Source: Octopus bimaculoides
Lineage: Eukaryota
DNA: 63,722 nt
Reading direction: 5' to 3'
Assembly: GCF_001194135.2 (NCBI RefSeq)
Contig: NC_068994.1
Span: 50,999,944-51,063,665 of the forward strand
Part shown: in pieces, positions 22,223-62,400 of the stretch
Layout of the letters: each line of letters opens with the position of its first letter
Position numbering within the stretch: position 1 is the first letter of the stretch
Translations under genes and position numbers: made by a program
Notes under the pieces: generated by a model
What the model saw: only the letters and a program-made list of their open reading frames with translations
The model's database searches: none
What the model was told of the DNA's origin: nothing

Positions 22223-22667
22223 TATATACACACACACACACACACATACACACACACACACACACACACATATATANNNNNNNNNNNNNNNNNNNNNNNN
22301 NNNNNNNNNNNNNNNNNNNNNNNNNNNNNNNNNNNNNNNNNNNNNNNNNNNNNNNNNNNNNNNNNNNNNNNNNNNNNNNNNNNNNNNNNNNNNNNATATA
22401 CGACAGGCTTCTTCCAGTTTCTGCCTACCAAATCCACTCACAAGGTTTTGGTCAGCCCAAGGCTATAGTAGAAGACATTTGCCTAAGGTGCTATGCTGTG
22501 GGACTGAACCTGGAACCATGTGGTTGGGGAAGCAAGTTTCTTACCACAGAGCCACATTGCCGAAAATACATTAACTTCACAAAGATGATAAACTTACCTC
22601 AAGTTTCGCAAGTCTTTCCATTTCTTCTTGGGCAAGTTCTTTCTCAGATTTCATTTTGTTACTTGCC

Positions 22668-22721
<54 letters not shown>

Positions 22722-38374: not shown

Positions 38375-38446
<72 letters not shown>

Positions 38447-39133
38447 ATGTGTGTGTGTGTGTCTGTCCCCCCACCATCTCTTGAGAACTGATGGTGTGTT
38501 TACGTCCTGAAACTTAGTGGTTCAGCAAAAGAGAACGATAGAAAAAGTACTAGGCTTACAAAGAATAAATTCTGGGGTCTTTTTCTTCAACTAAAAGAAT
38601 AAAAGAATCTGTTTATGTATGTTTGAATTACAAGTTCTGTCCCATCAGATGGCTGTCTATGGTTTTAATCCACCCAGTTTCTCTCACAATGTATGGGTCG
38701 ATCCAAAGCTAATGAAAATGATGCTTATGATGCTGGCACTTTGTAAAAGAAGCACACAATACCCACTGTAAAGTGGTTGGTGTCAGGAAGGACATCCAGC
38801 TGTAGAAATCGTGTCAAAATAGACGGAGCTTGGTGCAGTCCTCTGCTTTGCCATCTCCTGTCAAAGCTATACCAGAATGGAAAATGGGTGTTAAATGATT
38901 ATTTCCTGCACTGGGATTGAACCTAGGAGGCCCTCATGGTTGTGAAGTGAACTTAACCAATCTGCCATATTCTTACTTACATTTGGACATATATCTTTAT
39001 ATAAGCATGTTATTTATATATTCTAGAACTTTAGGTCCTTCTTCAAAACCGTTTTTTTTTTTTTTCTCTCTTCCTTTTCATTGGATTCATGGAATAACTG
39101 GCTGTCTTGTTTCTTAGCAGAACATAGCAGCAA

Positions 39134-39346
39134 ATGGACACGTCTGACTTTGAGAATTTGTCTGAAGAAGAAATCAGGGCCCTGGTCCTGAAAGCAACAC
39201 AGTCAGTTGAGAAATGTCCCAGTGTTAAACGGAAGCGTTCAACTAGGAAATGTAAAATTAATTTTGTCGAAGTAATCACTGAAATATCTCGAAGAGTAGA
39301 TGGAATTTGCCAGAAAGATATTCTTGTTGCTCCGAAAGCCTGTTAA
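39134..39346 (+). CDS. Unassigned 70-aa small ORF (MDTSDFENLSEEEIRALVLKA...KRKRSTRKCK...APKAC)
   Basis: Preceded by pyrimidine tract plus TAGCAG acceptor (39115-39120) and an in-frame upstream stop; non-repetitive, exon-like composition; very AT-rich sequence after the stop; no family recognised. Confidence 0.5.
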   Translation: MDTSDFENLSEEEIRALVLKATQSVEKCPSVKRKRSTRKCKINFVEVITEISRRVDGICQKDILVAPKAC

Positions 39347-42300
39347 TATTTTATTTATTTATTAATTTTTTTTACAATTTCTATTTTTTCATTTCTTTTC
39401 GTTTCTGTGTTAATTACTGGTTGGCACACTAGCAGAACTGGTAGAGCAACAGGTTAAATGTCTGGCTCTATTTATTTAAATGCAATCTTTTATGTTTGAG
39501 TTTTAATGCTGTTGAGGTTGAACTTTGCCTTTCAGTCTTTCACCAGTTGATAAAACAAGTACCAGTCATGTACTGGGGTCATGTATTGATTATCACCAGC
39601 CTAAGTTACAAATGCTTTTTCGTTATTATTTAAAATGTTCTCAAAACTGTTCTTGATTTTATGTAATATATATAAATATTTGAGAGGAATTAACCAAAAA
39701 CTGGTTGGAAAAAAATTCCTGGATTGAAATTTCTAAATTTCTGAGATTATTTATTTTGCTGTAAATAAGATTATTTTTCAAAATTAATTAACCACCTCTT
39801 TAAAGTGTATATTTTTTTGTATGTTTTTTTTAAGAAAAAAATCTTCATGTTTAGCAATATTTAATTTATTTAAAACAAAACAAAACATTTTAAATTTAAA
39901 CACAAGATAAAAACAAACCAACATGGTTGAGATTGTTAGAATCCCAACTCAATTGTTGTGTTCTTCATATCTGCCGTTGGCATTTGGTAGAACATCTAAT
40001 TAATTCTATGTTGCCTTAGTTCAGCTACTTGTGATGGTGTGGTATGAAGTGGTGGTGGTGGGGAGATAGATACCAGATTTTTTTTTTCTCTGGGTGTGTT
40101 TATCTGTGATAAATTTGTGACATGTCTACAAAGAGATATGTCCAGCCACCATTTGTTTTTTTTTAAACTTTTACATGTTATGTTGATGCTTTCCTGTCAG
40201 GACAAAGAAAGTAAGTCCTACACACAAATGAAAGTGACTTTTACTGTGATTTGGCTGGAATTCAGCTTGAATTGCCTCTGGGATCAGTGCTACAATTAGC
40301 TTAATGGAGTTTTGTAGCTTAACTCAGAATTTAATTTTATTCCAACGAGCCTTTCTTGAGGTGGGAGTGAGACATATTCACGTTAGCGCTTCTCTAGATT
40401 GCATGGCTCATTCGCAGTTATCTCCCTTCTCAAAGTATCAACTTACCCTAGAAACAATCCAGTTATGACGTGTTATCACAAAATAAACTTTTTAGCGCCC
40501 ATCGTTATTAAGCCCTTTACGGTTGCTTGTTTTGTCTTTCCCCTTACTTTTTCCTATTTTTTTTTTTGTCTACGTTTCTTTTATTTTTAAACTTCTTCTG
40601 TTTACTTCTGGGAGCCCAGACTCTCTTAGTGTGGGCCATGTGGAGGAAGCTGTGTCACTGATACGGACATCATCCATCATGTTTGTCATAGTCCATCCAG
40701 TTGTAAAGACAAAGAGAAAGATCTAATTTGTTCTTTGTCAGCCGGAGTCGGGTAAATGGCATTGATGACAGATNNNNNNNNNNNNNNNNNNNNNNNNNNN
40801 NNNNNNNNNNNNNNNNNNNNNNNNNNNNNNNNNNNNNNNNNNNNNNNNNNNNNNNNNNNNNNNNNNNNNNNNNNNNNNNNNNNNNNNNNNNNNNNNNNNN
40901 NNNNNNNNNNNNNNNNNNNNNNNNNNNNNNNNNNNNNNNNNNNNNNNNNNNNNNNNNNNNNNNNNNNNNNNNNNNNNNNNNNNNNNNNNNNNNNNNNNNN
41001 NNNNNNNNNNNNNNNNNNNNNNNNNNNNNNNNNNNNNNNNNNNNNNNNNNNNNNNNNNNNNNNNNNNNNNNNNNNNNNNNNNNNNNNNNNNNNNNNNNNN
41101 NNNNNNNNNNNNNNNNTTAGTCACTTCGCTCCTCTTCTTGAAACGTCTTGTATTTCTCTGCTTTGTGTGGCTAAAACCAGCTTCAACTTTGTCCAAACTA
41201 CGGAATGGGAAGTAAATCCAGCTCAACTGCTGCTGATGTAAACTTGTGCTTTTTTGATAGCATTTTCTTCAAATTTCTTTAAAATGTTTCAGCTTCAAAG
41301 CTGTGGTCATGCTGGGGCATGTTTACATTTATTCTAAAGCAGTGTCTTAGCAGCCTCATTAGTGTTGGACAAAATGCCATACTGTAATTTTTCCAGCTCT
41401 TTACATTCCCATTTCAAATCTCACCAAAGTCATTTTTGCTTTTTGTCTCCTAGGGGTTTTTTTTTTTAAAATAAAATAAAGTACCATTTGACTAATCTCT
41501 TTCCCCACCAAAATTGTTCTCCTTGTGCCTAACTCAGAGACTATTATTCATATTCTAATAGTCACTGGTAGTTTTACTAGCGAATATTAATTTAGCTTCA
41601 AGTTCCACATACGCAATAATGTGCCTATCTTCTAAGGTTCCGTCTCTGCAGGCTTTGTTTTCTAATCAAATGGTAACAATCTCATTAGGAATGTCCAGTT
41701 TTGCTCTAGATCCCCAGAACACATTTTAAAAGTCTTTCCTTGACTTTTCAGGGTATTTTAAATACATTTCCATGTCACAATGTTTCTAGCTTCTTTCAAT
41801 TACCTTAAGTTTGAAAAATATTTCATTCCTGTGTATTTCATCCCTTTAGTATTCATATCACTCTGTCAAATGTGGTGCTTATTTATTTACTCTTGTAGCT
41901 TTGAGGTTTTTGGAACGACGTAGTAGGGTAGGTGTGAGAGGCTGGATCTGGCTGGTTTGAACATGGAACAATATTTTGACTGGATATAGTCAGTTAGACT
42001 ATTTAAGGGTCAAATAAGCTGATTTTGACTTGATCTTCTTTTAGGCTGACTCTGGTTTCAATATCTGTAACGCTTTTACTTTACAGATGCTTTTGTATTT
42101 CATTAAATTTTGAAAATAGACCTGATAAATAGAATAGATGCCTCTTGCATTGTTTCTGTTGTTCACACAGTGATGCTTACATCAGCAATATACTTCAGAC
42201 TTGAGTCATAGAAGTCAACAAGTTTTTACAGGTGACATCCTTGACAACCACTTTATATCCATGTGCTGGAGTAACTGGTTAAAAGTTTTATAATTTTGTT

Positions 42301-45300
42301 TACATTAGTCTTGAATGTAGATGTGTTTTAATTTAGCGATTTATCACATAGATGTTTTAAAGGCCTCCTGTGATTCACCACTGAATTCTTTGGTACCAAA
42401 GAACAGTATACACATTGCAATGCTTTTTCTTGAGTCTGGTGGTGAATCCCTAGCTATGTTCAAGCATCATGGCTGTCTTATTAGTCACTGCTTTAATATT
42501 CCTGACAATAATCCGTGACTTATTTTTCACAACACATCAACTTTGAGGTACTAGGTAAGCAGATAACCACCATTAATCTACTTTAGGCTTGGTCTATCAC
42601 ACTTCCCAGAAGCCGTAAGAATATTTAAAATTCCAAAAGTTGGATTCATTGAGTTGACTGCTTTGTCAGCTTTCAGTTACAAAATTTCAGTTGATTCCTA
42701 AGAATTTAACTCCCTTGGGGGCCTTGGTGGACATAATCATCCCAGTTTTGATGTACCTCACTCTTACAAGATGAGTTGTCTGTGGTGCTACAATGAACCT
42801 GTGGCAGGAGTTAGGGATCGCATCTCTTGCTGTTACTCGTGTTTTTTATTGTTAAGGAAAAAGATAATTTTTTTTTTTTAAGGTAAGCATTTACTTCCAG
42901 GATTGGATGTAAAACAGACCCCTTTATCTTAAACTATCTTTTTTCATAAAGACAGATTGCTTGTGAACAATTTTTTTTAAAGCAAATTTTAGTTAAACAG
43001 TTCAACTAAATAATTTTATAAAAAAAAATTCAGCACTGTCATCTCATGAAGTATATTTTGTGATAAAACAAGAACAAACAAAAGGATATTTTTATTTATG
43101 CATGATATATAACTACTTGGGTGGCAGACATATATATATATACATATAAAGGCCTTTGTTAAATATTTTTTTAATGTTATATATTTCTTCCTTCATATTT
43201 GTTAATTATATTTTTGATAAAAAAAAACAAAGTGAAATAAATAATTCCATCACAACATTGGAGTTGTCTATAATTTTCGTTGTTTTTGCATTCTCTTAAT
43301 TTCTGAGGTAAAATGCTGACTTGGCTGTTTGTCTTTGCAATAAAATTCCAGGGTGTGATAAAATGAGTACCAGTAATATACTGGTTTGGGTTAATAGGCT
43401 ATCATTACCTTTACTTTAAATTTGTGGTTTGGTGCTGTGGTGGATTGGCTAAATCACAAGAGCAGTGGAGAAAATACATTGCAGTATTTTTTTTCCTGGC
43501 TCATTTTGTACATCTGAAAATGAAGTGAAAATAATTTCTTGCAGACACAAGGCTGCTGTTTACACATGCACACACATACATACATATATTTTATTTGTTT
43601 CGGTCATTTGACTGTGGCCATGCGGGACCACCGCCTTTAGTCGAACATTCAACCTCAGGACTTATTCTTTCTAAGCCTAGTACTTATTCTATCAGTCTCT
43701 TTTGCCGATCTACTAAGTTATGGTGATGTAAACACATCAACAGTTGTCAAGCGATGGTGGGGGGACAAACATATATATATACGATGGGCTTCTTTCAGTT
43801 TCCATTTGCCAAATTCACTTACATGGCTTTGGTCGCCCCGAGGCTATAATAGAAGACACTTGCCCAAAGTACCATACAGTGGGACTGAACCTGGAATGAT
43901 GTGGTTTGTAAGCAAGTAACTTAGCACACACATATACATATAATGTTACTATTATGTTAAACACTGCCTTGAAGGATTTTAGTCAAATTAACTCCGGGAC
44001 TTGTTTCTTTTTTAAACCTAGTACTTATTCTATCAGCCTCTTTTGCAAAACCGCAAAGTTATGGTGATATAAATACACCAACACTAGTTGTCAAGTGGTG
44101 ATAGGGATACACACACACACACAAGCTTTCAGTTTTCATGTTTATGAAACCTACTCACAAAGCTTTGGTTGGTCCAAGGGTATAATAGAAGGTGCCACAT
44201 AGTGAGACTGAATCTGGAACCCTATGGTTGGGAAGTGAGCTTCGTACCACATAGCCATTTTATATATAACACATGTGCAGACACAGTTTACTGTTCCATA
44301 AAGGTAAGATCAATAAAACAATAAAAAAAAAAAAGTACTCGATCCAATGACATATAGGATTTAATGTATACAGTATAAAGATGTAAGCTTCTAATAGTTT
44401 CTTGCACTGGTGATGTAGGTCTAGACAGATTTTTATAACATTCCTTGTGTCTCAGCAGTCTACGGGCTCTGAGCACATGGTCTATTCAATTAGCAAAACT
44501 GGATGCTGCTGGTACAAGAGAAATCACAAGAAAAAGATAAGGTAGATGTAATAAGTGGAAGAGTGAATAAAAACAGTGAAAGAAAGTTAGTGTTATGTTC
44601 ACTTTGACTGTAGAGCAATAATTAAGCTCGTTGAAGAATAATNNNNNNNNNNNNNNNNNNNNNNNNNNNNNNNNNNNNNNNNNNNNNNNNNNNNNNNNNN
44701 NNNNNNNNNNNNNNNNNNNNNNNNNNNNNNNNNNNNNNNNNNNNNNNNNNNNNNNNNNNNNNNNNNNNNNNNNNNNNNNNNNNNNNNNNNNNNNNNNNNN
44801 NNNNNNNNNNNNNNNNNNNNNNNNNNNNNNNNNNNNNNNNNNNNNNNNNNNNNNNNNNNNNNNNNNNNNNNNNNNNNNNNNNNNNNNNNNNNNNNNNNNN
44901 NNNNNNNNNNNNNNNNNNNNNNNNNNNNNNNNNNNNNNNNNNNNNNNNNNNNNNNNNNNNNNNNNNNNNNNNNNNNNNTATCTCTGTGGCATTTCTTCAG
45001 GCTTTTTGCGTTTAACCCTTTAGCATTTAATCCGGCCATATCTGGTTCAAATATTCTACCTGTTTTATGATAAAACAGACAATATCCAACTTCTCACGCC
45101 TACCTTACAATGTCATTTTTAAAATATACAAAACACACCATTGAAATATTGAAGTTACAAGGTAATCATCATCATCTAATGGATGCTTTGACCATGGCTG
45201 GTAAGCTGGAAGGCTGCACCAGACTCCAGTCTGATTTGGCATAGTTTCTATGGTTCGATCCCCTTCCTAATGCCAACCACTCTGAGAGTGTAATGGGTGC

Positions 45301-45499
45301 TTTTACTTGCCATTTGCATGACACCAGTATCTGCCCTGATAATGGTTTTGCTCAGCTTGATGCTGTCTTCTTAAGTACGGCGTAATGCCCAAGGTCTTGG
45401 TTATTCATCATTGCCTCTGTGAGGCCCAACACTCAAAAGCTGCTTTTCATGTGCCACCAGCATCAGCCACCTTGCCTCAGTAAGGCCCAACACTCAAAA

Positions 45500-45800
45500 G
45501 GTGCTTTTTATGTAACACCAGCATCGACTACAACCATGATTTAACTTGGCTTGATGGGTCTTCTCCAGCACAGCATATTGCCAAAGGTCTTGGTCACTAG
45601 TTATTGCCTCTGTTTGACCCAGTGTTCGAAGTTCATGCTTCATCACCACGTCCCTATGTCTTCCTGGATCTACCTCTACCACAGGTTCCTTCTTCAGTTA
45701 GAGATCAACACTTCTTTACACAGCTGTCTTTGTCCATATGCATCACATGACCATACCTGCGCAGTCGTTTCTTTTGCACACCACACCTGATGCCCAATAG
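45500..45800 (-). mobile_element. Older copy of the same RTE-like ORF2 3' end
   Basis: Reverse complement resembles 13950-14180. Confidence 0.75.
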
Positions 45801-45832
45801 TACATGATTAATTCAAATCTGCTATAATAATA

Positions 45833-46202
45833 ATAAGAGCACTCAGAGAGCACAGACCTCTGCCAAGGTAACACCAACGTCCTCTCAACGATTAGCCAAA
45901 GATGATTTTTAAAATGAGAATATCTGGAAAAAACTCGACTGCTCTCACAAACGAGACTACTAGAAATGAACCCGACTGCTCTCAAAAGTTAAGTAAAAAA
46001 AAAAACAGAAAAATAATCCAGAATCCTTGTCTGGTACTAGATCAATCCCAAAATCTAATCAGTTCATGCCAGGCACGACGCCAAACATCCCTGAAAGTTC
46101 CATTGGAATCCATCCAGCGGTTCTTGAGATAATCTTGTCCACGGACAAGCAAACACGACTGAAAACAATACCCCGACCTTTGCTAAGGTGGAGGTAATAA
46201 TG
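45833..46202 (-). mobile_element. Helentron-associated (HINE/DINE-1-like) non-autonomous element; partial copy 22797-22880
   Basis: Minus strand starts TTATTACCTCCACC...TTGTTTTCAGTCGTGTTTGCTTGTCC and ends CCTTGGCAGAGGTCTGTGCTCTCTGAGTGCTCTT, giving subterminal inverted repeats. Confidence 0.55.
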
Positions 46203-47291
46203 ATAAATACCCTGATGCAGTACTAGGCAGTGACTCTCATGGCTTCTGATCTTAACTGATTGGAAGTATTATCATGTACATTGTTTTGTCTTGGTATAAA
46301 AGATGGGCTACAGCAAATATTCTGCTTAATACCACAGATTTGCATGTCAGTTGTTTGACCTTAACCAGTTGAAAATGTCCCTCAGTGGCTGACGATATGT
46401 GCATCTCTGATCATGAGCAGAAGTAGTGGGGGAGCATCAAAGCCATGTGTTGAGAGGAATTCTTTGGGGTTTGAATAATTCACCTCTGGAAACATGAGTG
46501 TTTCGTTCAACATCCTTAAACAACCCTTATTCAAGGACCTTTTGAGCAGGATGGGTTATTCAGCCTGAAGAAAATTCTAACTGGGCCCCACCTGCAAGGT
46601 CATGCGCTGTTTATCTTGATATGAGATCACCATATTGCGCACATATGACTATGATGCATGTGCCTGGTCTACCCTTATCAGACGGGTAGTCATGATGGGT
46701 ATAATGGGCTTCGGATATTTTACCCCATGTCACTTTGATGGCATGCATTGCTCTCTTACTCAATAATAATGATAATAATAATAATAATAATAATGTTGGT
46801 TTCAAATTTTGGCACAAGGCCAGCAAGTTCAGGAGAGGAGTAAATTATATTAATCCAGTACTCAACTGGTACTTATTTTATCAACCTTGAAATGATAAAA
46901 AGTAAAGTTGACTTCAACAGAATTTGAACTCAGAACATAGCGGAAGACAAAATGCTTCTAAGCATTTTGCCCAGTGTGCCCATAATTCTGCCAGCTTAAC
47001 AATAATAATTCTTTCTACTGTAGACACAAGGGCTAGTTGATTACATTGACCTCGGAGCTTGACCGGTACTAGGTGGATAACAAATTGGCTGAGTCGAGAT
47101 CAAGATTTGCAGTATGTGTTGGGGTTTGCTGTAGTCATATTGCTGAGATCAACTTTGTTTACCAATTTGGGGAGGTCTGCAAATGTTACAAACACTGCTT
47201 TGTCTCGATACTAACAATGTCATTCAAATGCTAAATCTTTTTTTTTTTTTTTTTTTTTTTTTCAGGGACTCTCCTGTGAAGCATTTGATGT

Positions 47292-47369
47292 ATGCTGAAA
47301 AGAATTGTGTCCAAATTAGTGCTTACTTTGAAGCCAAGAAAAATGCTGGAAGTGCTAACAACCAGCGAG
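47292..47369 (+). CDS. PUS1: PUS1 coding exon 1 ([26 protein letters not shown]); exon starts at 47266
   Basis: Poly-T tract plus cag acceptor at 47265; in-frame TGA upstream (47277); gag|gtatac donor; presequence-like peptide. Confidence 0.75.
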
Positions 47370-48703
47370 GTATACAAAAATACAATGTATTATGTCATAG
47401 TATGTTGGCCCATCTTGACTGAGCCACATTACTTGTTTTAGTTTCCTATCTAACTAGTCACTATGTACATGATTGCTTGAGCTGCTAGCTAGAAACAACA
47501 GCCAAATCTACCTCAAATTACATAACTCAGGTTCTACCATCTAATAATAATAAGAAAATAAAGTTAGAATATTTTGGATACTAATGCCTGAATATGTGGA
47601 GGCGCAATGGCCCAGTGGTTAGGGCAGTGGACTCGTGGTCGGAGGATCTCGGTTTCGGTTCCCAGACCTGGCGTTTTGTGTGTTTATTGAGCACAAACAC
47701 CTAAAGCTCCACGAGGCTCCGGCAGGGGATGGTGGCGACCCCTGTTGTACTCTTTCGTCCCAACTTTCTCTTACTCTTTCTTCCTATTTCTTGAGTAACG
47801 CTGCGATGGACTGGCGTCCGGTCCAGCTGTGGGGAACACATACGCCATAGAAACCGGGAAACTGGGCCCATGAGCTTGGTTAGGCTTTGAAAGGGCGCAT
47901 AAATAAAAAAAAAATGTCTGAATGTAAGATGAGAGGATCACAAATGAGCTGTCCTTGATTATAAATCTGCTGGTATAGGATTGGTCTGGAGTTAAACAAC
48001 AACAAGAAAGAAGGACACAAGATAATGAAGTTTTATATACACTGTGTCTGAATAAATGAATGAAGGTACTTAATTCAAATCTTTCCTTGAGTGTTTATAA
48101 GAGAAGAATATACGAGGGGCTGCTGAAAAGTTCCTAGCTTTGGGTAAAAGAAAATACTGGAGGATCAGTTAATTATGATTTTATGCAACATATTCCCTTC
48201 TCAGATTAACACACTTATTGCAGTTTTTCTAAGCCTTGCAAAAGAACTCAGAAGGTTGGGCCTTAAACCGGGCCTTTTGCGATACCCTTAAAACCAGGAA
48301 CTTTTCAGAAGCCCCCTCCTCATGTATAAATTATCTCCAATTCCCTTTGATTTACTGGTTTACGGGAGTTAGCTCCAGAAACATGGCTCTTATGCATATT
48401 GGAANNNNNNNNNNNNNNNNNNNNNNNNNNNNNNNNNNNNNNNNNNNNNNNNNNNNNNNNNNNNNNNNNNNNNNNNNNNNNNNNNNNNNNNNNNNNNNNN
48501 NNNNNNNNNNNNNNNNNNNNNNNNNNNNNNNNNNNNNNNNATGATGACAATAATGATGACAGCAAAACTCCTTCGAAGCTTCTTAAAGTGAGTTTATTTC
48601 AAGATTATAATTTTTCAAACTATTAATCTTGTCTTTGAGAGAAGAAACCTTTCTTCTTCCTCTCTCTCTCTTTTTCACAATATTACAAGCATACTTGTCT
48701 GTG

Positions 48704-48737
<34 letters not shown>

Positions 48738-49112
48738 ATACACACACATGGTGGCGAGCTGGCAGAAACGTTAGCACACCGGGCGAAATGCTTAGCAGTA
48801 TTTCGTCTGTCTTTACGTTCTGAGTTCAAATTCCACCGAGGTCGACTTTGCCTTTCATCCTTTCAGAGTTGATAAATTAAGTACCAGTTGCATACTTCCT
48901 CAAAAATTTAGGGCCTTGTGCCTAGTGTAGAAAAGAATATTACAAGCATGGCTGTGGGGTTAAGAAGCTTACTTCCCAATAATGTGGTTTCAAGTTCAGT
49001 CCCATTGCAAGGCACCTTGGACAAGTGCCCTCTATTATAACCCCAGGTTGACCAAAGCCTTGTGAGTGGATTTGGTTGACAAAAAATGAAAGAGGACCAT
49101 CATGTCTGTGTT

Positions 49113-49151
<39 letters not shown>

Positions 49152-52100
49152 TCTTGTCTTGACATTGCACTACAGTTGTGAAACTTATAATTTATTATGC
49201 ATTGAAATTATTATTACATGAAAAAGGCTGTGAAATGGCTGTAATCCTAAGGATGACATGTGGTTAAATAAACATATTCACCTCTCATACATCCTGACTT
49301 TATATATATACACAGACTACACATATACATACACTCACACCTATGCACACATACGTGTGAATGTTTTATACGTTCATGTCCACATGTAAGAATAATGTGT
49401 TGTTATTTCTCTTTACAACCAGAAATCCGAAGCAAACATTCCTATCCGAACTGATCGGAAACGTAAAGTAGCATTGTTAATGGCATACTCTGGAGAGGGT
49501 TACTATGGCATCCAAGTGTGAGTAGACGAACAACTGTTTGTTTCATCTATCTCTGTTATGTTGTTGTTCACTCTCCCCTTATTGCATATATCACTCTCTT
49601 CCTCACACTTTCCTATCTGCCTCTCTATCTCTCTACTTCACTTCCTCTCTCTCTCTCTCTCTCTGTCTATCTTACTGACTACCTCTGTCTCTGCTTTCCT
49701 TTCTCTCTTACATTCTCTACCAACCTCATTCTCTGTTCCTATGTCTCTTTTCTCCCCCTCTACCAACTTTCTCTATTTCCATGCAGGTCACTCCTCCCCA
49801 TCACATGCACACTCTGAAAAAAAGCATTCTAAAATTTTCCTATATTTTCATTTTACACTTGATTTTACCTCCATTTTTATTTGTCTCTCTTTCATTAACG
49901 ATTTCTAGTAATTCCGCTTTCCCAACAATCGAGAGTGAACTGTTCAAAGCACTGGTTGCTGTCGGACTCGTGCCACAAGACCATGTAGACAACCCATATA
50001 AGGTAAGTGTGTGTGTGTGTTGTTAATCTACACCAGTGGTTCTCAGCTGGGGTCCATATGGCCCCTAAGGCTCATATGGCTTTGGTTGTTCTTAGGCTAT
50101 GGTAGACGACACTTGCTCATGGTGTCATGAAGTGGGACTGAACCTTGAACCATATGATTGGGAAGCAAACTTCTAACCACACAGCCACGCCTGCTCCTAC
50201 GATAGTATTTTAATGTAATTTCCCACCTCATTCCACCTCATTTTGTTTCACTGTTCCATCATCCGAACTACAAATATAATACATTACACAAATGATGTTG
50301 TGCCTTTGAGCAAGGGACATAACTCTCTATGTTCCAGTTTGACTGACTGAGGAAGAAACGAGAGATTACTCTGCCGCCTCGTGGTTAGGTGTCAATCAAA
50401 CCTGATCAAGCAGACTTATGTTTAAAGGCGTTCTAAATATGACCATCCAGTCTTTTTTCAAACACAGTGCATCTCTGACTATCTGGTATGTCTTTCCTTT
50501 TTAAAGACAGTAAGGTGTGGGTTGAAGGCAATTTGTCTACTGTCTCTAGTTTTGTGTTTTCCTACAGGTTTCTTTTTTGGTGGGTGGTTTAACTCCCAGA
50601 TCATCTCTGATCCTGTAGATATTTGAGCAACGACATTTTAGCCATGACCATGCTGTCTTCTTTTTATTTGTCATTATATCTAGGACCTTGTTATTTATCC
50701 TCTCAATAAGAAACCTCTACTCAGCCACTTGACCCAACAAGAACAGCACTCAATTCTCCCTCAAATCATATCTTGCTGTCTTAGAACGGGAGTATCCTTA
50801 AGCAAAGACCATGACTTTGTTTGCTTCATTTTGATAAACTTGACAAAGGGGCAACTCCCACAAGAAAACAAAAAAAATTAACCCCTTAGTTTCTACTGGT
50901 TCTTCACAGTTAGATGTTTAATGGTAGAAAGAAGCAGAAAACATCATGTCTTATGGAAAATGGGCAACATAGAGAAATAGATACAAATTGTGGAGAAGGA
51001 ATAGTCAAATCGCTCCAGTACTTGACTGGGAGTGTATTTTATTGACCCCAGAGGAATGAAAGGCAAAGTTGACTTTGGCACAATTTGAACTCAGAACATA
51101 AAGAGTTGACAGAAATATTGATATCAACTTTTGGCACAAGGCCAGCAAGCTCAAGGAGGGGAGTAAATTGATTACATCAACCCCAATGCTCAACTGGTAC
51201 TTATTTTATCAACACTGATAGGATGAAAGACAAAGTTGACCTTAGTGGAATTTGAACTAAGAACGTAAAGACAAACGAAAATGTCACTGAATATTTTATC
51301 CGGTGTGCTAACGGATTCTGCCACTTCATTAACTTCAGAACTGAAAGAAATATTGCAAGGCATTTAGTCAAATGCTCTAATGATTCCGGTACCCTAAGCT
51401 GAACTCAAACTTTAAAAAAAATTTTCATGATAGGTGATGTTAATAGTGATGTTCTATCTGTTTACTGCTAACCAACTGACCTTGTCCTAGTAAACATTGA
51501 AGTCATGCATTTTTTTCCTATTTTTTTCAGATGTCTTTCCAAAGAGCTGCTCGTACAGATAAAGGTGTGTCTGCTGTTGGACAAGTTGTTTCACTGAAGA
51601 TAAGTATCCGAACTGTATTATTGTGTTATTTAAATTTTATGCCTCATTACACTTCTAATTAGTCATGCCAGCTCCAGGTGAAAGATACCAATGTTGGCTG
51701 CGCATGAAAAGCCCCTGTGTTGCTGCTATGTGAAGACCATCTGTGCTTGTACCACAGAAAAAGCACTCATGTCAGTACCTTGTAAAAAGTACCCTTGCTG
51801 ATTTCATGTCATGAGTACCCATGTTGCTGTCACATATAAAGTACCTGTGATGGCACCATGTAAAAGCAACCAGTACACTCTGTAAAGTGGTTGGCATTAG
51901 GAAGGGTATCCAGCCATAGAAACCATTCCAAAACAGACAATTGGGGACAAATGCAGCTCTCCAGCTTGTCAGCCCCTGTTGAACCATCCGACCCCTGCCA
52001 TCCTGATACGGACACAACACAGGCTACACTTTTAGATTTTTTGGATGAAGTTTTCAGAAATAACCCAATAACTTTACCATTAATTCTGTGAAATATTCTC

Positions 52101-55100
52101 AGGTCCTGTTAGTACCTATTAATCTCAGTCACAAGGAATTTGACAGCCCATGGCTATCATAGACGTTTTCAGATATTTGTGTTTGTAGTAGAATTGCAGA
52201 ATACATTCAAATGGTGAGAGACATTTCCTTTTGGCTCACATTTGCTAACTTTGCTCAAGTCAAATATTCCTGTTAAGAAAATGGCAGTTTGTATGTTGGG
52301 GTACACATCATACTTAGAGGCTTTGCTTTATTGCTTAATGTCTTTTTATATTTCTTTTATTTACATGTTGATAAATGTGGATAATTTGATTGATCGACTC
52401 AATGAGACACTTCCAACACAGATCAGAATCTTGGGTAAGTCAGTCTTTTAAATGATTTTAAATCTCTTGTCTTGTGGTTTTCTCTTTCTCCTGTTTGTTT
52501 TATGGTTTTATTATTTATTGTTTGGTATGGATAAAAAAAAAAAAAAGAGCCTTCTGATGGGAAATGAATGAAATTTATTTATTCATCATCACCATCATCA
52601 TTTTTTAACATTTACTTTTCCATGCTTGCATGGGCCAGACAGTGGTGCATTGAGCAGAGTTTCTATGACCAGGTACCCTTCTTGTTACCAGTCCCTGCTT
52701 ATTTCCAAGCACGGTAATAATCTCTCAGTCTATGGAACAACAAACAGCCTGGACATGCTTGTATGGTAGACTGTCAGTAAACAACACCATCAGACCATCC
52801 AGAGGCCATTACTTACAAACCAGCAAACATACACAAGGGATATACAAACTTACAGACACACATGCACATACACACACACATACATACACATATGACAGGC
52901 TTCTTTCAATTTCCATCTTGCAAACCCACAGACAAATCTTTGTTAGGCTGGGAACTATAGTAGAAGATACTTGCCCAAAATGCCACGCATTGGGATTGAA
53001 ACCGTGTGGTTGGGAAGCAAACTTCCTTACTACACTGCCTTGCTTGCACCTATCTTGCTTTCTACAATTTGCTTTCTAAACAGAATTTCTAAATCAAAAT
53101 GGAAAGAGATAACATTTGAGCTGATAGCGAGTCAACTGGTTTATTGTATCAATTCTAATTTTCTCTTGTGTCTTTCATTTTTGTAGGCATGCTGCGTACG
53201 ACAAATTCTTTCAACAGTAAGAACCATTGTTCACATCGTACATACATTTATGTGATGCCAACGTTTGCACTGACTCCTGTAGAAGAGGTATGTATGTTGA
53301 AAATTGCATCTTTTCTTTTGCAATATTTGTTATTTAACCCTTTTGTTACCAACCTGGCTGAAACCAGCTCTGGTTCTGTAGTACAAATGTCTTATTTTCA
53401 TAAGTTTTGAATTAAAATTTTCCACCAAACCTTAGTCACAATTTATGTTCCTAACACTAGCCTAATGACAACTAAGTTATTTTACTAAATTCTTTGTTAT
53501 ATATATATATATATAGTTTACATTTTCTTTTTTATGTTTTATTTTATTGTTTAAATTCTAAATGTTTTTTTTTCTTTCTTTCATTCCAGAATGTTGTTTT
53601 AGATTACAGAATAGATGGTAAGCTACCTGAAAAATATTTCCTTTCTGTCATTGAACTTTGAATTATGAAGTGGGTTAGATGTCCTGTTGCTGTTAGGATT
53701 ATGTCCTAACACAACAAAACACGACCCTAATTCATAGTATATTCTCATAGTAAGATAAAGAATTGACAGTTCATATTCTGTAACTCGACTTCCTTCTCTC
53801 TCTCAATGGCCATTCCACCTCATTGTATGGGGCTGGCAGCACTATTAAGAAAAGTTCCACAAGTGCTTTTTGTTGGACTGCAATTTTTTAATTTAATGCC
53901 TTAAGTGAAGTTAACTTAGAGTAGACTGATGTGATGGCAGATTAAATCTTTTGATATCAACCTGTCTGAGACCATCCTTGGTCTTATAATACAAGCTTCC
54001 TGTTAAAAGCTTTCAGCATTCAAATTACTCAGTCAGATGTAAAGCTTATTCACATTGTTTTGAATTAATTATGCATCATCTCATAACTTTGAGATTTTGA
54101 AGATGTGATTGTTTATTTGTAGAACGACTTTGTAGGGAAGGTGTGAGAGGCCAGATCTGTTCAGTTTGAACATAAAACAGGTTGAATATTTGGGTATAGT
54201 TGTAACAATAGTGGTTGTATAATGATGATGATGATGATGATGGTGGTGGCGGTGATGGTACAGCAGTAATAATAGTGGTTGTATGATGATGATAGTGGTG
54301 GTAGTAGTGATGAATATAAAGATGGTGGTGGTGATGATGGTATAGTCGTAACAGTAGTGGTTGTATGATGATGATGATGATCATGGTGGTGGTGGTAACT
54401 GGAGTGATGATGGTTATGTTAAGCCTAAAACTCCTATTTCTCTATATTTCAGAAAGCAAATTGGATGAGCTGAACAGCGTTTTAAGTTTGTTTAAGGGAA
54501 CACATAATTTCCATAATTTCACCTCTGGACGGTAAGACATCCTCTCTTTTTTTCTTTCTTTCTTTCTTTCCTTTTGCTTATTCTCCTCCCCCTCATCCTC
54601 TCACTTTTTCCTCTTGTCTCTCTTTTTCTCTCATTCTTTCTGCCCACTTTCACTTCCTCTCTCATCTACCGTCTTCTTTCACACACATCCATTTTTTCTG
54701 TCTTCTCTCTCTCTCTCTCTATTCTTTTATTCTTTTACTTGTTTCAGTCATTTGACTGCAGCCATGCTGGAGCACTGCCTTTAGTTGAGCAAATCAACCC
54801 CAGGACTTATTCTTTGTAAGCCTAGTACTTACTCTATCGGTCTCTTTTGCTAAACCGCTAAGTTATAGGGACTTAAACACACCAGCATTGATTGTCAAGT
54901 GATGTTGGAAGGGACAAACACACAGACAAATACATACACACACATACATACATACATGTATCATCATCATCGTTTTATATCTGCTTTCCATGCTGGCATG
55001 GGTTTGACGGAGGACTGGTGAGCCGGAGGCTGCACCAGGCTCAATCTGATCTGGCAAAGTTTCTACAGCTGAATGCCCTTCCTAATGCCAATCACTCTGA

Positions 55101-58100
55101 GAGTGTAGTGGGTGCTTTTACGTGCCACCGGCACGAGAGCCAGTCAGGCAGTACTGGCAACGACCACGCTCAAAAGGTGTTATTAAGTGTTACCTGCACG
55201 GGAGCCAGTCCGGTGGCACTGGCAACGGCCATGCTCGAATGTTGTTTTTCACGTGCCACCAGCACATGCGCTGGTAAGGCGACGCTGGCAACAATCACGC
55301 TCGAATGGTGCTTTTCACGTGTCACCGGCACAGGAGCCAATCTGTGGCCCTGGCAACGATCACGCNNNNNNNNNNNNNNNNNNNNNNNNNNNNNNNNNNN
55401 NNNNNNNNNNNNNNNNNNNNNNNNNNNNNNNNNNNNNNNNNNNNNNNNNNNNNNNNNNNNNNNNNNNNNNNNNNNNNNNNNNNNNNNNNNNNNNNNNNNN
55501 NNNNNNNNNNNNNNNNNNNNNNNNNNNNNNNNNNNNNNNNNNNNNNNNNNNNNNNNNNNNNNNNNNNNNNNNNNNNNNNNNNNNNNNNNNNNNNNNNNNN
55601 NNNNNNNNNNNNNNNNNNNNNNNNNNNNNNNNNNNNNNNNNNNNNNNNNNNNNNNNNNNNNNNNNNNNNNNNNNNNNNNNNNNNNNNNNNNNNNNNNNNN
55701 NNNNNNNNNNNNNNNNNNNNNNNNNNNNNNNNNNNNNNNNNNNNNNNNNNNNNNNNNNNNNNNNNNNNNNNNNNNNNNNNNNNNNNNNNNNNNNNNNNNN
55801 NNNNNNNNNNNNNNNNNNNNNNNNNNNNNNNNNNNNNNNNNNNNNNNNNNNNNNNNNNNNNNNNNNNNNNNNNNNNNNNNNNNNNNNNNNNNNNNNNNNN
55901 NNNNNNNNNNNNNNNNNNNNNNNNNNNNNNNNNNNNNNNNNNNNNNNNNNNNNNNNNNNNNNNNNNNNNNNNNNNNNNNNNNNNNNNNNNNNNNNNNNNN
56001 NNNNNNNNNNNNNNNNNNNNNGTGCTGCCACTACCGTGCACCACCACCACCACTGCTGAGGTGCTGCCACTACCGTGCACCACCACCACCACTGCTGAGG
56101 TGCTGCCACTACCGTGCACCACCACCACCACCACTGCTGAGGTGCTGCCACTACCGTGCACCACCACCACCACCACCACCATCAGTATTACTTGTTGCTA
56201 TTGTTATTGTTGTGTAGCTGTACAATGTTGATAATGTTGCTCATTGATATTTATCTTTTCTCTCTCCCTCTCTCTCTCTCTCTCTCTTTCTCATCTTGTT
56301 TAGGAAATTCTCTGACCCAAGTGCCAACCGTTACATTATGGATTTTAAGGTAAGTTTTTCCCTAGTCTTTCAACATCTATTGTTTCTTCTACACACATCC
56401 ACATATATACATACACACACATACAGATGCATACAGACAATTTATCATGGGATATAATTTGTATTTAAAAAAAAAATTCAATCATAAAATAAGAGTGCTG
56501 ATTTAGCTGCTACTTCTAGCTGGTCAAGTAACTATTTAGAGTTCTTCCCTCTTTGGCTACATACCAGTAATATACAAGGGTTGATTGAATTGGTTCTACA
56601 TTCTCCCACTGCCTTCCATGTAGTGCTCAATCAAAAAGAAATCCATAATTTTATCGATTTGATGCTTTATTTCTCCTTCCTCTTCTTCATATTTTCAGGC
56701 AGGAAAACCAGTGGTCATCGATGGTCTAGAGCTGGTCACTATCAGGATTCAAGGCCAAAGTTTTATGCTGCATCACATTCGTAAAATGATCGGTATGCTA
56801 TTTACATATTTACATGTTTCCATTGTTGATATTCTCTTGTTGTTGTGTTGCTGTTTTTGTTGTTGTTGTTATGTTGGTGGCACTGTCTGATCTAGCAGAC
56901 CTATGGTCAAAAATGCATCATCCTTGACTCCCACATGTCTTATTTTTCTGGTATAAATATATCAAAGACAAAAGAGCAGTGATTCAGCAGTCATTAGGGT
57001 GTCAGATAGAATGCTTTACCAAGGGGTTGCTAAGCAGCCTTCTTAACCACACACCTGTACCCACACCTATATATTGATTTATTTTTGTCTTTTCCAGGTT
57101 TATCAATAGCCATTGTTCGAGGATTTTGTGGGAAGGATGTCATTGATCTTGCATGGAAGGCTGAGAAAGTAAGTCGAGCTTCTTCTACTTGCTTTTGTTG
57201 TTGTTTTTGCTGTTGCTACTGTTAAGGCTGCAAGTCATCTCAAGTGATAGTGGGGGATATTTTTTTGAGAGAATTTTGACAGTTATTTCTAGCAAGTCAG
57301 ACTACCATGTAATAATGTAATAAAGACGAGACTGAACTTAGATGTGGCTGTGTGGGAATATAAATGCAGATGTGTAAAAAGCACCATCCGAACGTGGCCG
57401 ATGTCAGTACGCCCTGAGTGGCACGAAAAAGCACCAACCGAATGTGGCTGATGCCACTACCCCCTGACTGGCTCTCGTGCTGGTGGCACGTAAAAAGCAC
57501 TATCCGAAGGTGATCGATGCCAGGCCCAACTGACTGGTTCCTGTGCCGGTGGCATGTAAAAAGCACCCACTACACACTCGGAGTGGTTGGCGTTAGGAAG
57601 GGCATCCAGCTGTAGAAACTCTGCCAGATCAGATTGGAGCCTGGTGTAGCCATCTGGTTCGCCAGTCCTCAGTCAAATCGTCCAACCCATGCTAGCATGG
57701 AAAGCGGACATTAAACGATAATGATGATGATGGTTCTTCTCAAGCACGGCATAATGCCAAATGGACTTGGTCATTGCCTTGTTGAGGCCCAACACTTGAA
57801 GCCCAGTGTAATTTAAAATGGTCTCGGCCCTTGCTCCCATGGGGCCCAACACTCAAAAGGTGCTTTTATATGCCACCGACACAGGTGCCATTTGCGTGAC
57901 AGTGGTATCTGCCATAACTGCAAGTTTACTTGGCTTGATGGGTCTTCTTCTCAAGCACAACATATGTATGTATTTATATCATTGGTTTATCTCTAGTGTT
58001 GTGTTTTGTCTTTGATCAAGTAATGGAGTATGGAACCATTGAATGATGACAAGATATTTTGAAAATGAAATTATGTGTTTGAACTGTTAAAACAACATGT

Positions 58101-59238
58101 TACTTATTTTCAAAATTTTTTCTTTACAGGTTGATGTTCCCAAAGCACCAGGATTGGGCCTTGTTCTAGAAAGGGTAAAGATTTTCTTTTTCTACCTATA
58201 TTTTCTTGCTATGGTCTGTGTATGTAGCACTTTAACCTTTTGTGATACATGGTGTTTTGGTATGTGTAGCCAAAAAGACCCAAATTTCTTTCTGTTGAGA
58301 TTGAAATTGATGGGTGCATATAGAAAACAATGGATAAAGTGCTTAAAACTATCAGCTCATTAAGAATGAAATGTCTGATTTTCTTATGCACCAAGTTTGA
58401 CAGTTGTCATCTCTAATGTTTTATCCTGACAGTTCTTTGTTTTACAACATTGAAGAGTTACATCATCATTTGAATTTGCTTCAGAAAGAGGACTATGTTT
58501 GTGATGGTTAGTTGGGGTGGGGGCACTAGGAATATGGCTTGGATGTCAAGTGGGTGGCAACCTGAAAAAGTCTGAGAACCAATGGTTTAAAGCATTAGTT
58601 ATGTACATTGTCCTTTCCATACATTTTCAATAATTTTAATAACATTATCACAATGGAAAGACCAAAATAGACTGCAAATCATGATGATTATGATGATTTA
58701 ATGTCATCTTCCATGTTGGCATAGGTTAGATGGTTTGATAGGATCTGACAAATTAGGGACTCCTTTTAGTCCTGTCTTTCTGAGAATTTACCAGATTCTC
58801 TGGGGCTGGTGTCACAAGAATAATTACCCAGTTGACTCCATATATTTACTAAATTCTTCATTGCTTTCACATTTAATTGAAATGAAGTTATTGTTTTCAT
58901 TGCATTTTTCATCAGAAATTTGGTAACAAAAAGGGGTTAACAAGCGTTTGAGTGGAATTAACTTCAGATTTGAGTGAAATATAAGTTGAGGAAGCTACTT
59001 GATAACAAAACATTAATTCATGTATGTTGTGTTAAAGTTTTATAACTGAATGTCATTGGTGTAAAATTGGTGTGATTTAATATTTGTCTTTTCTGGTTCT
59101 TCTATCTAGTTGCATTATAATGGTTACAATAAACGGTTTGGCAATGATGGCATCCATGAACCTTTAGTATGGGATAAATATGATGTAAGTACGACTTCAT
59201 GTTTTCACTATTATCATGACATAATCTCTCTCTCTCTT

Positions 59239-59298
<60 letters not shown>

Positions 59299-59420
59299 TT
59301 ATATGTGTGTGTTATCAACATTGATAATACAGTTTCATTATTTATGTCTTTCTAATATACTGTGATTAATGTACCTAAATGAATTAGTGATCATTCACAA
59401 TTTACAATGTGTACCTGTCA

Positions 59421-59459
<39 letters not shown>

Positions 59460-62400
59460 CATACACATGCACACACTTTATTTGTGGATTAAGGCTACCA
59501 TTGGTTTCATGTAAAAGAAGCCCTTAATGTTTATCGAGCCTGTCACATGGAACATTGGTTTTTGTCTTCACTTTGGATTAAAGCAAAAAAAAAAAAAATC
59601 ACGTGCACAATAAAAATAATGTGATTTTACGTGACTTTCAGATTAAAACACAAAAGACATAAAATTATAAAAATCACTTGGTGAGGTCAGTTTTGGCAAG
59701 GTTTTTTACAGCTGGATGCCCTTCCAAACACCAACCACTTTACAATGTGGACTGGGTGCTTTTAAGTGGCATCTGCATTGATAGGGTCACCAAGTACTTG
59801 TGAGACAACACACACACACACAATGGTTTTTCTGCACTCTTAGTCTACCAAATTCCGGCAAAAAGCCTCTGGCTACAGTAAAAAGCATTTAGTCAAGGTG
59901 CTGTGTTGTAGGATTGAACTTGAAACCATGTACTTAAGAAGCAAAATACTTAACAGTACAGCCACACCTCTGCCAGTTAACTTAGATATTTATAAATTTT
60001 TTTTTCTTAAACACAAAGGAAATAATCTGAAAAATTACGATCATATTAGGAATCCTTTTGTTTTTCTTCTTTCAAGAATCCTTATTCATGTTATTCTTCT
60101 TATTTTCTTTCTTAGGAGCAAATGGAGAACTTTAAAGAAGAATTTATCATGAAAAACATCGTTGAGAAGGAGAAAGAAGACAAATCGTATCCTTAAATTC
60201 TTTACTAACTTTGACCTCTATGACAACCAATACATGTGTGTTCTAGAAATTTTGTGACGTTGTTGTTGTTGATAATGTTGATGTTGTAAAGAGGGAGTTA
60301 ATGAAAAAAGAAAAAAGGCCCCTGCCTATTGTTGTTATTGTTGAACTCAAGTGGGCCCTTGTCAGAGCAGACTTATGATTTCAAGATGTTTCAGCCATCA
60401 CCTTCTTGTCTTCTTTTCAAATAGATTATTTCTAGGGGTTCATTATAGCGTTATTCTTTTTTCTTCAAGATGTTAGGATGTAATTTGAGAGAATTTTGGC
60501 TGCTATTTCTAACAAGTTGAATGATTGAACAGAGGACCCTTCATTAGCTCATTATGTTCAGCAGCATCAGCAGCTGTTGTTATTGTTTGGACCATGGTCA
60601 ATCCTGAATGGGCTGATCTGAATGGGCTGATCTTTAGGACGTTTATTGCTTAGTCATAATTGGGAATCTTCAAGTAAGGGACATAACTCTAGGCGTTTCA
60701 AGTTGAGTGAATCGTATAAAACCTTTCTCATTGGTTCATGTGTGTGTGTGTTGCACGTGTGTGATGTAGTGTGTAGTTAGTCTTCCTTTCGTGTTAGTGT
60801 AAAATCTTCCTTGACTCTTTATCCTCTCAGCCTCTTCAACTGGCTGCCTTGCCTCCATCATCACTACTACAAGGCTCATGTTGGCCCCATTGCTGGGAAG
60901 TCGTCACTCCACCATGCGATGCGGAAACTGTATAAGTTAGAGAAAGCAAAGTTAGACGTTGCACAACCAGCATGAAAGGAAACAGAGGTGGGGGACGGGG
61001 GTGGGGTGGGTAGGAGAGAAGACGAAGAAGAGAAAGAGAATAAGAATAGGATAACATCTCAAGAAATAACAAACAAACAAACAAACAGAAAAACACGTTT
61101 ATGTTTTAAATAATTGAGAGACAATACCAGCATGAGAGAAAAAATAAAATCAATAATTAGTGTTGATATACAGGGTTGGCCATAAGTCCCCCGACAGTAA
61201 ATCAAAATTCCATAAATACTTTCTGTAATTCTGTCTTGACTCGAATGGAAAAATGTGTCGCTCAAGAAGGACTTCAGTTTGAACAATTTTCATGATGTTT
61301 TATATTTAGATGCTTTTATTAAATTCAGTCAGTTGTTATATAGCTTCATATACGAGAAGGTGCTGGAAAGTTCCTGGCTTTGGGTAAAAGAAAATACAGG
61401 AGAATCAGTTAATTATGATTTTATCCGATATATTCCCCTCTCAGATTCACACACTTATTGCAGTGATCCTACAGTTTTTCTAAGCCTTGTAAAAGAACTT
61501 GGAAGGTTGGGTCTCCAACCATGCCTTCCATGATACCCTTGACGCCAGGAACTTTGTAGTATTCCCTCATATGATAATTATAAGGTGAAGACTACAAATT
61601 ATTTTGGTAAATAAATGGTTAATGTTATTTTATGTGTCTGACAAATTTCTTTGTTTTTGTTGTTACTTGATGAGTCAGTGAGGAGAAGTGCCTGTGGCTT
61701 TTGCAAGTTCTCCTACACGGGGAGATTGGTGTTAATATTCCCCTTTAGCTTTTGTGTGCAAATAAACTGTATTACATATCTGTAGCCAGAGGTTATAGAG
61801 ATGTGTTGTGTAATTGAATGTATGTGTGTGTATAGATATGTGTGTTTGTGTGCACATGTGTGTGTGTGTATTTAAGATATATTACACATGTCTATTATCA
61901 TCGGCCAGTATCTTTTTGAGCTTCTGTTTCTTTTTAAAATTTTGATTTTTTACCTAGCGTTCCTTAACAAGCTTCCAGAATGCTTAATTGGCTTGTCAGT
62001 TTACACAACCACACCTTCGGTTACGTGGACGACGAAGGTAAACGGTTAGCTACGGCTATATATGGGGCACAGCAGAACCTGAAAACAGCAGAAGCTAATT
62101 CTCTAAGCAGTGTAAGTTTGTCAGATATTTCAACTAGATTGAGGCTTACCGTGCAGTGGGACTGAACCTGAAGCTACATGGTTGTAAAGCAAGTTTTTTT
62201 TAACCACTCGGCCATGTCTGCACATGGAATAAAAAAAAAAAGAGAAAATCTTTTCCTTCGTTGCAACTAGGAAATTTTGGATTTGTCATTGTTGTCATCA
62301 TCACAATCATCATCATCATTACCCCCCCCTACTACTGCCCCCTCCCAGCAGCAAGCTTTGAACATTTTGACCATCTTTTTCTTTCCGTTCTTCTTCTTCT

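Follow-up and report, generated by a model that had tools for sequence, protein, structure and literature searches.

A probable U2-type AT-AC intron shared by molluscs and a leech in the PUS1 gene of Octopus bimaculoides

Introduction

Which spliceosome removes an intron whose first two bases are AT and whose last two are AC, and does such an intron still carry traces of where it came from? The question is raised by a stretch of 63,722 nucleotides (nt) of Octopus bimaculoides DNA (contig NC_068994.1 of RefSeq assembly GCF_001194135.2, positions 50,999,944 to 51,063,665 of the forward strand; hereafter the window). It contains the gene for a PUS1-type pseudouridine synthase, in which an intron with AT-AC borders directly follows the exon that encodes the catalytic motif. 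A first-pass annotation of this DNA had read the intron as one of the major-spliceosome (U2-type) class that had arisen from a minor-spliceosome (U12-type) intron and had kept traces of that past. Here we examine the borders of the intron, its splicing signals and its counterparts in other animals, and find that it probably belongs to the U2-type AT-AC class, while the supposed U12 traces are best read in other ways.

The U2-type AT-AC class, termed AT-AC II, has been known since 1997 (PMC1557818). It is very rare: the SpliceRack survey of Sheth et al. (2006; PMC1557818) found 24 AT-AC II introns among ~610,000 introns of five model species. Those of the human SCN4A and SCN5A genes have been shown to require the major spliceosome (PMC1557818). 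Such introns are valued as natural evidence for a pairing between the first and the last intron base, and in the account that PMC1557818 gives of work it cites, the change of G1 to A in U2-type introns of yeast and human was rescued by a change of the last G to C. As to origin, Lin et al. (2010; PMC2831892) proposed for the whole class a pathway from U12-type AT-AC introns through substitutions at positions +4 to +6, after which the termini are trapped.

Results

We located the borders of the intron through the mature coding sequence. To do this, 14 exons were pieced together by eye, translated and compared with the RefSeq protein XP_052828822.1 (P0122). With the AT-AC join and 12 other introns, the assembled coding sequence was identical to this protein at 341 of 341 amino acids (aa), and because of this identity the window is assigned to O. 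bimaculoides. Exon 3 (51531–51599, on the plus strand like all PUS1 features) encodes 23 aa including the RTDKGVS motif and ends with CTGAAG. The intron spans 51600–52364 (765 nt, phase 0). It starts with ATAAGTATCC at 51600, within the 5′ splice site aag|ATAAGTATCC (51597–51609), and ends with TTTCTTTTATTTAC at 52364, the terminal AC (52363–52364) standing in the context TAC-atg. Exon 4 (52365–52434; 24 aa, the last codon being split) starts with ATGTTGATAAAT at 52365 and is followed by a GTAAGT donor. The joined protein reads QVVSLK and then 17 aa, and this was the sole join that gave both the RefSeq protein and the conserved SLK-M.

The AGs nearest upstream of exon 4 are at 52316–52317 and 52318–52319, 46 nt before it, and the next one lies inside exon 4 at 52405. 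Since AT opens both the intron and exon 4, a TA-CA or an AA-AT intron would formally yield the same mRNA; of the three, only AT-AC is a known class. A same-length GT-GT alternative ending at 52368 was rejected, as it would produce SLK-IMI instead of the conserved SLK-ML. The sequence statements of the first-pass annotation, including the lack of an AG within ~45 nt of exon 4, all proved correct, and its account of the AT-AC borders, the phase-0 join, the U1-like donor and the pyrimidine tract holds on the sequence and on the identity with the RefSeq protein. Its expectation that gene predictors would probably mis-annotate the junction was not borne out: the RefSeq models of both O. bimaculoides and Octopus sinensis, as well as the protein models deposited for Haliotis, Potamilus and Helobdella, use the join. 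Existing annotation pipelines thus already cope with the PUS1 AT-AC intron.

The first-pass annotation had proposed a comparison of the orthologous termini in molluscs and other lophotrochozoans, and this comparison returned AT-AC in all four further species that have the intron. The independent assembly of O. sinensis reads aag|ATAAGTATCT ... TTTTTTTTTTAC|atg, ending in TTTAC, and its intron measures 1298 nt as against 765 nt in O. bimaculoides. The gastropod Haliotis asinina (ttgaag|ATATGTAGCT ... TCTTTTCCAC|atg, 2070 nt, 3′ end TTTTCCAC), the unionid bivalve Potamilus streckersoni (ctcaag|ATAAGTTTCT ... CTTGTTACAC|atg, 2126 nt, 3′ end GTTACAC) and the leech Helobdella robusta (ttcaag|ATACGCATCT ... 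CCTACTTTAC|atg, 162 nt, 3′ end CTACTTTAC) share with the octopus the position after S[LF]K, the phase 0 and the AT-AC ends. No intron was present at this position in the nemertean Tubulanus polymorphus, the hemichordate Saccoglossus kowalevskii or amphioxus. Because the intron is common to the octopuses, Haliotis, Potamilus and Helobdella, it already existed, with its AT-AC ends, before molluscs and annelids diverged. This divergence took place at least ~540 million years ago.

Protein and transcript sequences agree with the join. Homologues from molluscs, annelids, brachiopods and nemerteans pass from S[LF]K to M or L with zero insertion, and a transcript contig of another cephalopod (L001, Logan SRR8281691; the protein is 77% identical) reads TTA AAG ATG CTC CTG AAT GTG GAC across the junction. 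The junction-centred protein search returned no octopus transcript fragment. Among the 80 loci obtained in a metagenome scan, 77 run straight across the junction, as expected for complementary DNA or intron-poor organisms. The eukaryotic metagenome contig L039 (JAAUYM010113612.1, 467–1795) reads CTT AAA ATG A|GTGAGT ... TTTTCAG|AT TTG, and L073 (JAAUYK010118716.1, ~2060) has a GT-AG phase-1 intron at the same place. Relative to the AT-AC position of lophotrochozoans, both introns are shifted downstream by 4 nt, and they are not the same intron as the AT-AC one. AAG-ATGAGT would itself make a U1-like site, and a 4-nt slide between GT-AG and AT-AC forms is conceivable; as an origin of the AT-AC intron, a slide from a GT-AG phase-1 intron of the L039/L073 type seems less likely than conversion of a U12 intron.

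We assigned the spliceosome class by counting matches to consensus sequences and complementary bases, not with the SpliceRack position weight matrices, and the U1 and U6 small nuclear RNA (snRNA) sequences used were those of established knowledge, not of octopus. Compared with the full U1 complement CAG|GTAAGTAT, the octopus donor matched at 9/11 positions and the donors of the other four species at 7–8/11. Between −2 and +6, the octopus sequence aag-ATAAGT departs from the consensus at +1 only. When +1 was left out, the AT-AC donor had the highest U1 match in the gene (9/10), compared with 4–8/10 for the 11 U2-type GT-AG introns and 3/10 for the terminal U12 intron. Positions +5 to +9 (GTATC) are complementary to U6 GAUAC at 5/5 positions, which is true of no other donor in the octopus gene. 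In the five orthologues, the donor reads aag followed by ATAAGT, ATATGT or ATACGC; G+5 is invariant, ATATCC occurs in none, and the 3′ end is YAC-atg in all.

At the 3′ side, pyrimidines take up 15–18 of the last 20 informative positions across the five orthologues and 15–19 of 20 in the other introns of the gene; the tract of O. bimaculoides (52343–52362) has 17/20 at −22 to −3. Upstream of the tract, TTGCTTAAT (52331–52339) is the likely U2-type branch region: its UUAAU fits yUnAy, and the putative branch A, at 52338, precedes the 3′ end by 26 nt (by 25 nt in O. sinensis). Similar branch-like motifs are present in Potamilus (TTGTTTAAT, 24 nt from the 3′ end) and Helobdella (TTTTAAT, ~18 nt by hand count). 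U12-type signals were not found. The donor ATAAGTATC matches the U12 AT-AC consensus ATATCCTT at 4/9 positions (4–5/9 in the other four species), the donors of the five species match the U12 consensus ATATCCTTT at 4–5/9 with CC at +5/+6 in none, and TTGCTTAAT has no CC, lies too far from the 3′ end for a U12 branch site and is followed by a pyrimidine tract. With a U2-like donor, a pyrimidine tract, a candidate branch site within 18–40 nt and borders kept in orthologues, the signals fit the operational AT-AC II definition of Sheth et al. 2006 (PMC1557818). We conclude that 51600–52364 is probably a genuine phase-0 spliceosomal intron of the U2-type AT-AC (AT-AC II) class, and its signals make removal by the major spliceosome similarly probable.

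Several points weigh against this conclusion. The assignment to the major spliceosome comes from sequence features only, and ATACGC, the donor of Helobdella, makes a weak U1 site. That O. bimaculoides uses the junction is taken from the RefSeq model, homology and the transcript of the other cephalopod. The sample behind the absence of the intron consists of one nemertean, one hemichordate and one cephalochordate. In addition, C+9 is found in 5/5 orthologues, as opposed to 1/11 GT-AG donors of the octopus gene, and T+10 in 4/5. This pattern looks like constraint and not like a relic. We prefer the reading that extended pairing with U1 (+7, +8) and with U6 (+7 to +9) may offset the A at +1 and account for C+9. 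The constraint on C+9 may also be of another kind, including one exerted by a minor-spliceosome factor.

The last intron of the same gene serves as an internal control. The first-pass annotation had maintained that PUS1 still holds a true U12 intron, and the donor and branch motifs bear this out. This intron (60187–61978), of the U12-type GT-AG kind, is a textbook example, with GTATCCTT ... TTCCTTAAC, then 10 nt, then AG. Its donor, atc|GTATCCTTAA, is at 60187, and it has two alternative acceptors, 61978 with TTCCTTAAC at 61960–61968 and 60830 with the branch motif TTCCTTGAC at 60807–60815. They lead to two C-terminal isoforms, one with KS plus 11 aa as in XP_052828822.1 and the other with KS plus another 11 aa as in O. 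sinensis X1. The window has just two exact copies of TTCCTTAAC, and the only one on the plus strand is that which stands 10 nt before the AG of this intron. The U12 donor is kept in O. sinensis, Haliotis (GTATCCTTT) and Saccoglossus (GTATCCTTCC) and is weakened in Tubulanus (GTATCTTT). The two introns share a gene and have had equally long to change, yet the U12 intron has retained U12 signals and the AT-AC intron shows none. At the conserved position of the U12 intron, Potamilus (L004, ~38435–53538) reads aaaag|GTAAGTGG ... TGTATTCAG|c, a U2-type intron of unchanged phase; apparently, the last intron was converted from U12 to U2 in this lineage alone.

What, then, of the U12 traces claimed for the AT-AC intron? 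One of them, TTGCTTAAT, is two mismatches away from TTCCTTAAC and one from TTCCTTRAY. Matches of this quality are at or below chance level in the window, with 204 observed TTCCTTAAC-like matches against 229 ± 16 expected, and 58 matches to TTCCTTRAY with at most one mismatch against 72 ± 10 expected. TTGCTTAAT sits 26 nt before the 3′ end, a spacing usual in U2 branch sites and too wide for U12 ones. Furthermore, intron 1 of PUS1, which has an ordinary GTGAGT donor, contains TTCATTAAC at 49891–49899, one mismatch from the U12 branch consensus and 9 nt before the AG. It is a better-placed U12 look-alike than TTGCTTAAT, and such motifs arise by chance in U2 introns. The other claimed trace, ATCC at +7 to +10, reads ATCT in O. 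sinensis; this contradicts the reading of ATAAGTATCC as a U12 donor with a 4-base insertion, which we rejected as numerology. Use of GTATCC at 51604 as a U12 donor was likewise rejected, there being no in-frame AG or AC 10–15 nt past the branch-like motif. Neutral U12 relics would not be expected in any case, because any conversion would predate the mollusc-annelid split and the intron sequence is unalignable between taxa. The claimed traces are accordingly best read, from the comparison of the orthologues, as chance resemblances or functional U2-type features, and the intron does not appear to be a recent convert from U12 to U2. Of the first-pass interpretation, the U2-type AT-AC class is supported on the sequence; the traces of a U12 past are not, since the U2-like form predates the mollusc-annelid split.

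Could the join itself be mistaken? A canonical splice from GT(51604) to AG(52317) would add 17 residues and turn the AT-AC join into an artefact of homology-driven modelling. The frame does stay open across these residues in O. bimaculoides, and GTATCC (51604–51609), which includes both the GT of this donor and the claimed ATCC trace, resembles a U12 GT-AG donor. An open frame across 16 T-rich codons is not unusual, however, and the corresponding stretch of O. sinensis has 46 nt instead of 47, a 1-nt deletion that shifts the frame into a stop, with a donor that reads GTATCT. The insertion is also absent from the homologues of every phylum compared. This frameshift and these homologues contradict the GT-AG splice as the main isoform. 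As a U1 site, taa-GTATCC is poor, and no U12 branch motif precedes the AG at 52317. Finally, AT-AC recurs where no GT-AG alternative exists, Helobdella having no GT near its donor at all. We regard the GT-AG splice as highly improbable. An assembly or sequencing error at 51600 (A) or 52364 (C), which would disguise an ordinary GT-AG intron, has only the rarity of the class in its favour; it is refuted because O. sinensis, assembled independently, has both bases, as do Haliotis, Potamilus and Helobdella at the orthologous position, and we give it practically no credence.

If the borders are real, the remaining alternatives concern the machinery and the origin. The minor, U12-dependent spliceosome might remove the intron despite degenerate signals, or the intron might be a 'hybrid' that needs minor-spliceosome factors: AT-AC termini are mostly U12-type, minor introns are comparatively numerous in molluscs (PMC10639083), and a small fraction of 'hybrid' introns are affected when the minor spliceosome is inhibited (PMC11347168). 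The branch-like motif, one mismatch from TTCCTTRAY, might be counted on the same side. Yet the donor matches ATATCCTTT at 4/9 without CC at +5/+6, the pyrimidine tract is strong, the branch motif lies 25–26 nt from the 3′ end, the same U2-like signals recur in four other lineages, and the true U12 intron located 8 kb downstream presents contrasting U12 signals; removal by the minor spliceosome is therefore very unlikely in our estimation. An origin as a U12-type AT-AC intron that turned U2-type and kept its termini, with ATCC and TTGCTTAAT as leftovers, has more to recommend it. PUS1 has a true U12 intron, and U12 introns cluster in genes (PMC1557818); of 15 human AT-AC II introns, 10 belong to sodium-channel genes, in which U12 introns occur as well (PMC1557818); the pathway has been proposed for the whole class (Lin et al. 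2010; PMC2831892); and the near-match of TTGCTTAAT to TTCCTTRAY and the C+9 kept in all five orthologues could be taken as remnants. The published route, however, consists of point substitutions and not of a 4-base insertion. With ATATCC in none of the five orthologues and U2-like signals in all, any conversion must predate the mollusc-annelid split, and the supposed leftovers fare no better, given the ATCT of O. sinensis, the chance-level frequency and the position of the branch motif, and the better-placed U12-like motif in an ordinary U2 intron of PUS1. The real U12 intron retains its U12 motifs across these taxa, which indicates that U12 signals were not generally eroding in the lineages compared. 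We consider such an origin with surviving leftovers unlikely. It is likewise doubtful, on our assessment, that the intron is the frozen end-product of the U12-to-U2 AT-AC 'rare pathway', completed before the mollusc-annelid split; within the window, only the presence of a U12 intron in the same gene speaks for an ancient U12 origin. If that were true and an outgroup with the U12 form at the same position were found, the intron would be a datable and polarised example of the pathway, beside an unconverted U12 intron of the same gene.

The identity of the host gene is supported by several lines of evidence. A tblastn probe with P0121 and P0122 together with reading of the frames placed the PUS1-type pseudouridine synthase gene at ~47.3–62.6 kb on the plus strand. 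The homologue search led to O. sinensis PUS1 at 95% identity, with XP_052828822.1 of O. bimaculoides in the same 90% cluster. The protein has a PseudoU_synth_1 domain (PF01416, E = 1.8e-11), and the human PUS1 structure 4IQM aligns with it at E = 2.5e-104, uninterrupted across the junction (human QVVSLKVWL-IDDILEKIN). The RTDKGVS motif with the catalytic Asp is invariant in a 14-sequence alignment (A3). Domain, motif and full-length similarity to PUS1 place the protein in the PUS1/TruA pseudouridine synthases. As in XP_052828822.1, the coding region (49480–60978) comprises 14 coding exons, at 49480–49517, 49909–50002, 51531–51599, 52365–52434 and 53187–53287 (exons 1–5), 53590–53617, 54453–54531, 56304–56349, 56699–56792 and 57098–57168 (exons 6–10), and 58130–58174, 59110–59184, 60116–60186 and 60831–60978 (exons 11–14). 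Longer isoforms have exons upstream of 49480, at ~47292–47372 and from 49423. The 13 introns of the model are 11 GT-AG introns with GTAAGT-like donors, the AT-AC intron and the terminal U12-type intron.

Other features of the window are as follows. Within the AT-AC intron, the stretch at ~51850–52000 (plus strand) matches several other places of the O. sinensis PUS1 locus, on both strands and at 76–88% identity, and is a dispersed repeat. Assembly gaps (runs of N) occur at ~22.2–22.4, 29.2–30.1, 33.0–33.3, 40.8–41.1, 44.6–45.0 and 48.4–48.55 kb, none of them in PUS1 exons or the AT-AC intron. The Rfam scan of the window gave no matches. On the minus strand, 43089–42838 holds a possible U12-type AT-AC intron of ~250 nt, with the donor aaaa|ATATCCTTTT at 43089 and an exact TTCCTTAAC at 42859–42851 followed by 10 nt and AC-gag; the flanking frames are open over the join (VCHPSSYISCINK R VTARDAIPNSCHRFIVAPQTTHL), and a GTAAGA donor follows at ~42767. 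Also on the minus strand, ~20500–29200 contains long open stretches, including NPFEIKVNKQKHHILGRK, RFKDNQVVDKRIGENDANLSYEEKMAKRF and NDEEDLTHYGQSLSEIDTFEDPLNSDDEDYDGRI, which we take to resemble exons of a gene for a NOP14-type nucleolar protein.

Discussion

Given that the PUS1 intron probably belongs to the AT-AC II class, how might the major spliceosome handle an intron with neither G at +1 nor AG at its end? The U1 small nuclear ribonucleoprotein would recognize aag|AUAAGUAU through 9/11 base pairs although +1 is A, and U6 would then pair with +5 to +9 (GUAUC). At the other end, U2AF65 bound to the U-rich tract and U2 paired at UUGCUUAAU, ~26 nt upstream, would allow the 3′ site to be used although it lacks an AG. 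In the second step of catalysis, a pair of the first A and the last C would stand in for the usual non-Watson-Crick contact between two Gs. Reversion at a single end would then be impossible, and the AT-AC pair would be evolutionarily trapped; because both ends must change simultaneously, AT-AC may persist for long (Lin et al., PMC2831892).

The proposal has parallels among known introns. The SCN4A and SCN5A introns and the other AT-AC II introns of SpliceRack share with the PUS1 intron the AT-AC ends, a U2-type donor (ATAAGT) except at +1, G+5, the pyrimidine tract and borders conserved between distant species, and the SCN genes likewise carry a U12 intron. PUS1 differs from the catalogued cases in gene and in clade (Lophotrochozoa), and its intron is known here from sequence, those of the SCN genes by assay. 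A precedent for such persistence is the AT-AC II intron of TAF2, which is common to human and Drosophila (PMC1557818) and has kept its odd termini for more than 500 million years. The TAF2 intron spans the deuterostome-protostome split, whereas only molluscs and an annelid proved to have the PUS1 intron, which the one nemertean and two deuterostomes compared lack. With U12-type AT-AC introns (ATATCCTT ... TCCTTAAC, then 10–15 nt, then AC), the PUS1 intron has only the terminal dinucleotides in common; donor, branch sequence, branch distance and pyrimidine tract are all different. U2-type GC-AG introns offer another comparison, as their odd terminal base, like that of the PUS1 intron, is offset by a better match of the remaining 5′ splice site (Sheth et al. 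2006; PMC1557818). In GC-AG introns, by contrast, the mismatch is at +2, the 3′ end is still AG and no paired change at the two ends is needed.

The literature searched held no link between PUS1 and AT-AC, U12 or minor introns, and PUS1 is absent from the examined supplementary files of a human minor-intron catalogue. What is new is a lophotrochozoan AT-AC II intron in PUS1, beside a conserved U12 intron; the class itself is known, and the intron is implicit in RefSeq. The case also suggests that comparison across species is needed before a short U12-like motif close to a splice site is taken for a relic. Major-spliceosome AT-AC introns are very rare and carry weight as natural evidence for the pairing of the first and last intron bases. 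The PUS1 intron would add one in a housekeeping gene, older than the split between molluscs and annelids and standing beside an equally old intron that has retained its U12 signals. It would thus provide a clean comparative case for trapped AT-AC termini in U2-type introns, and a convenient test substrate.

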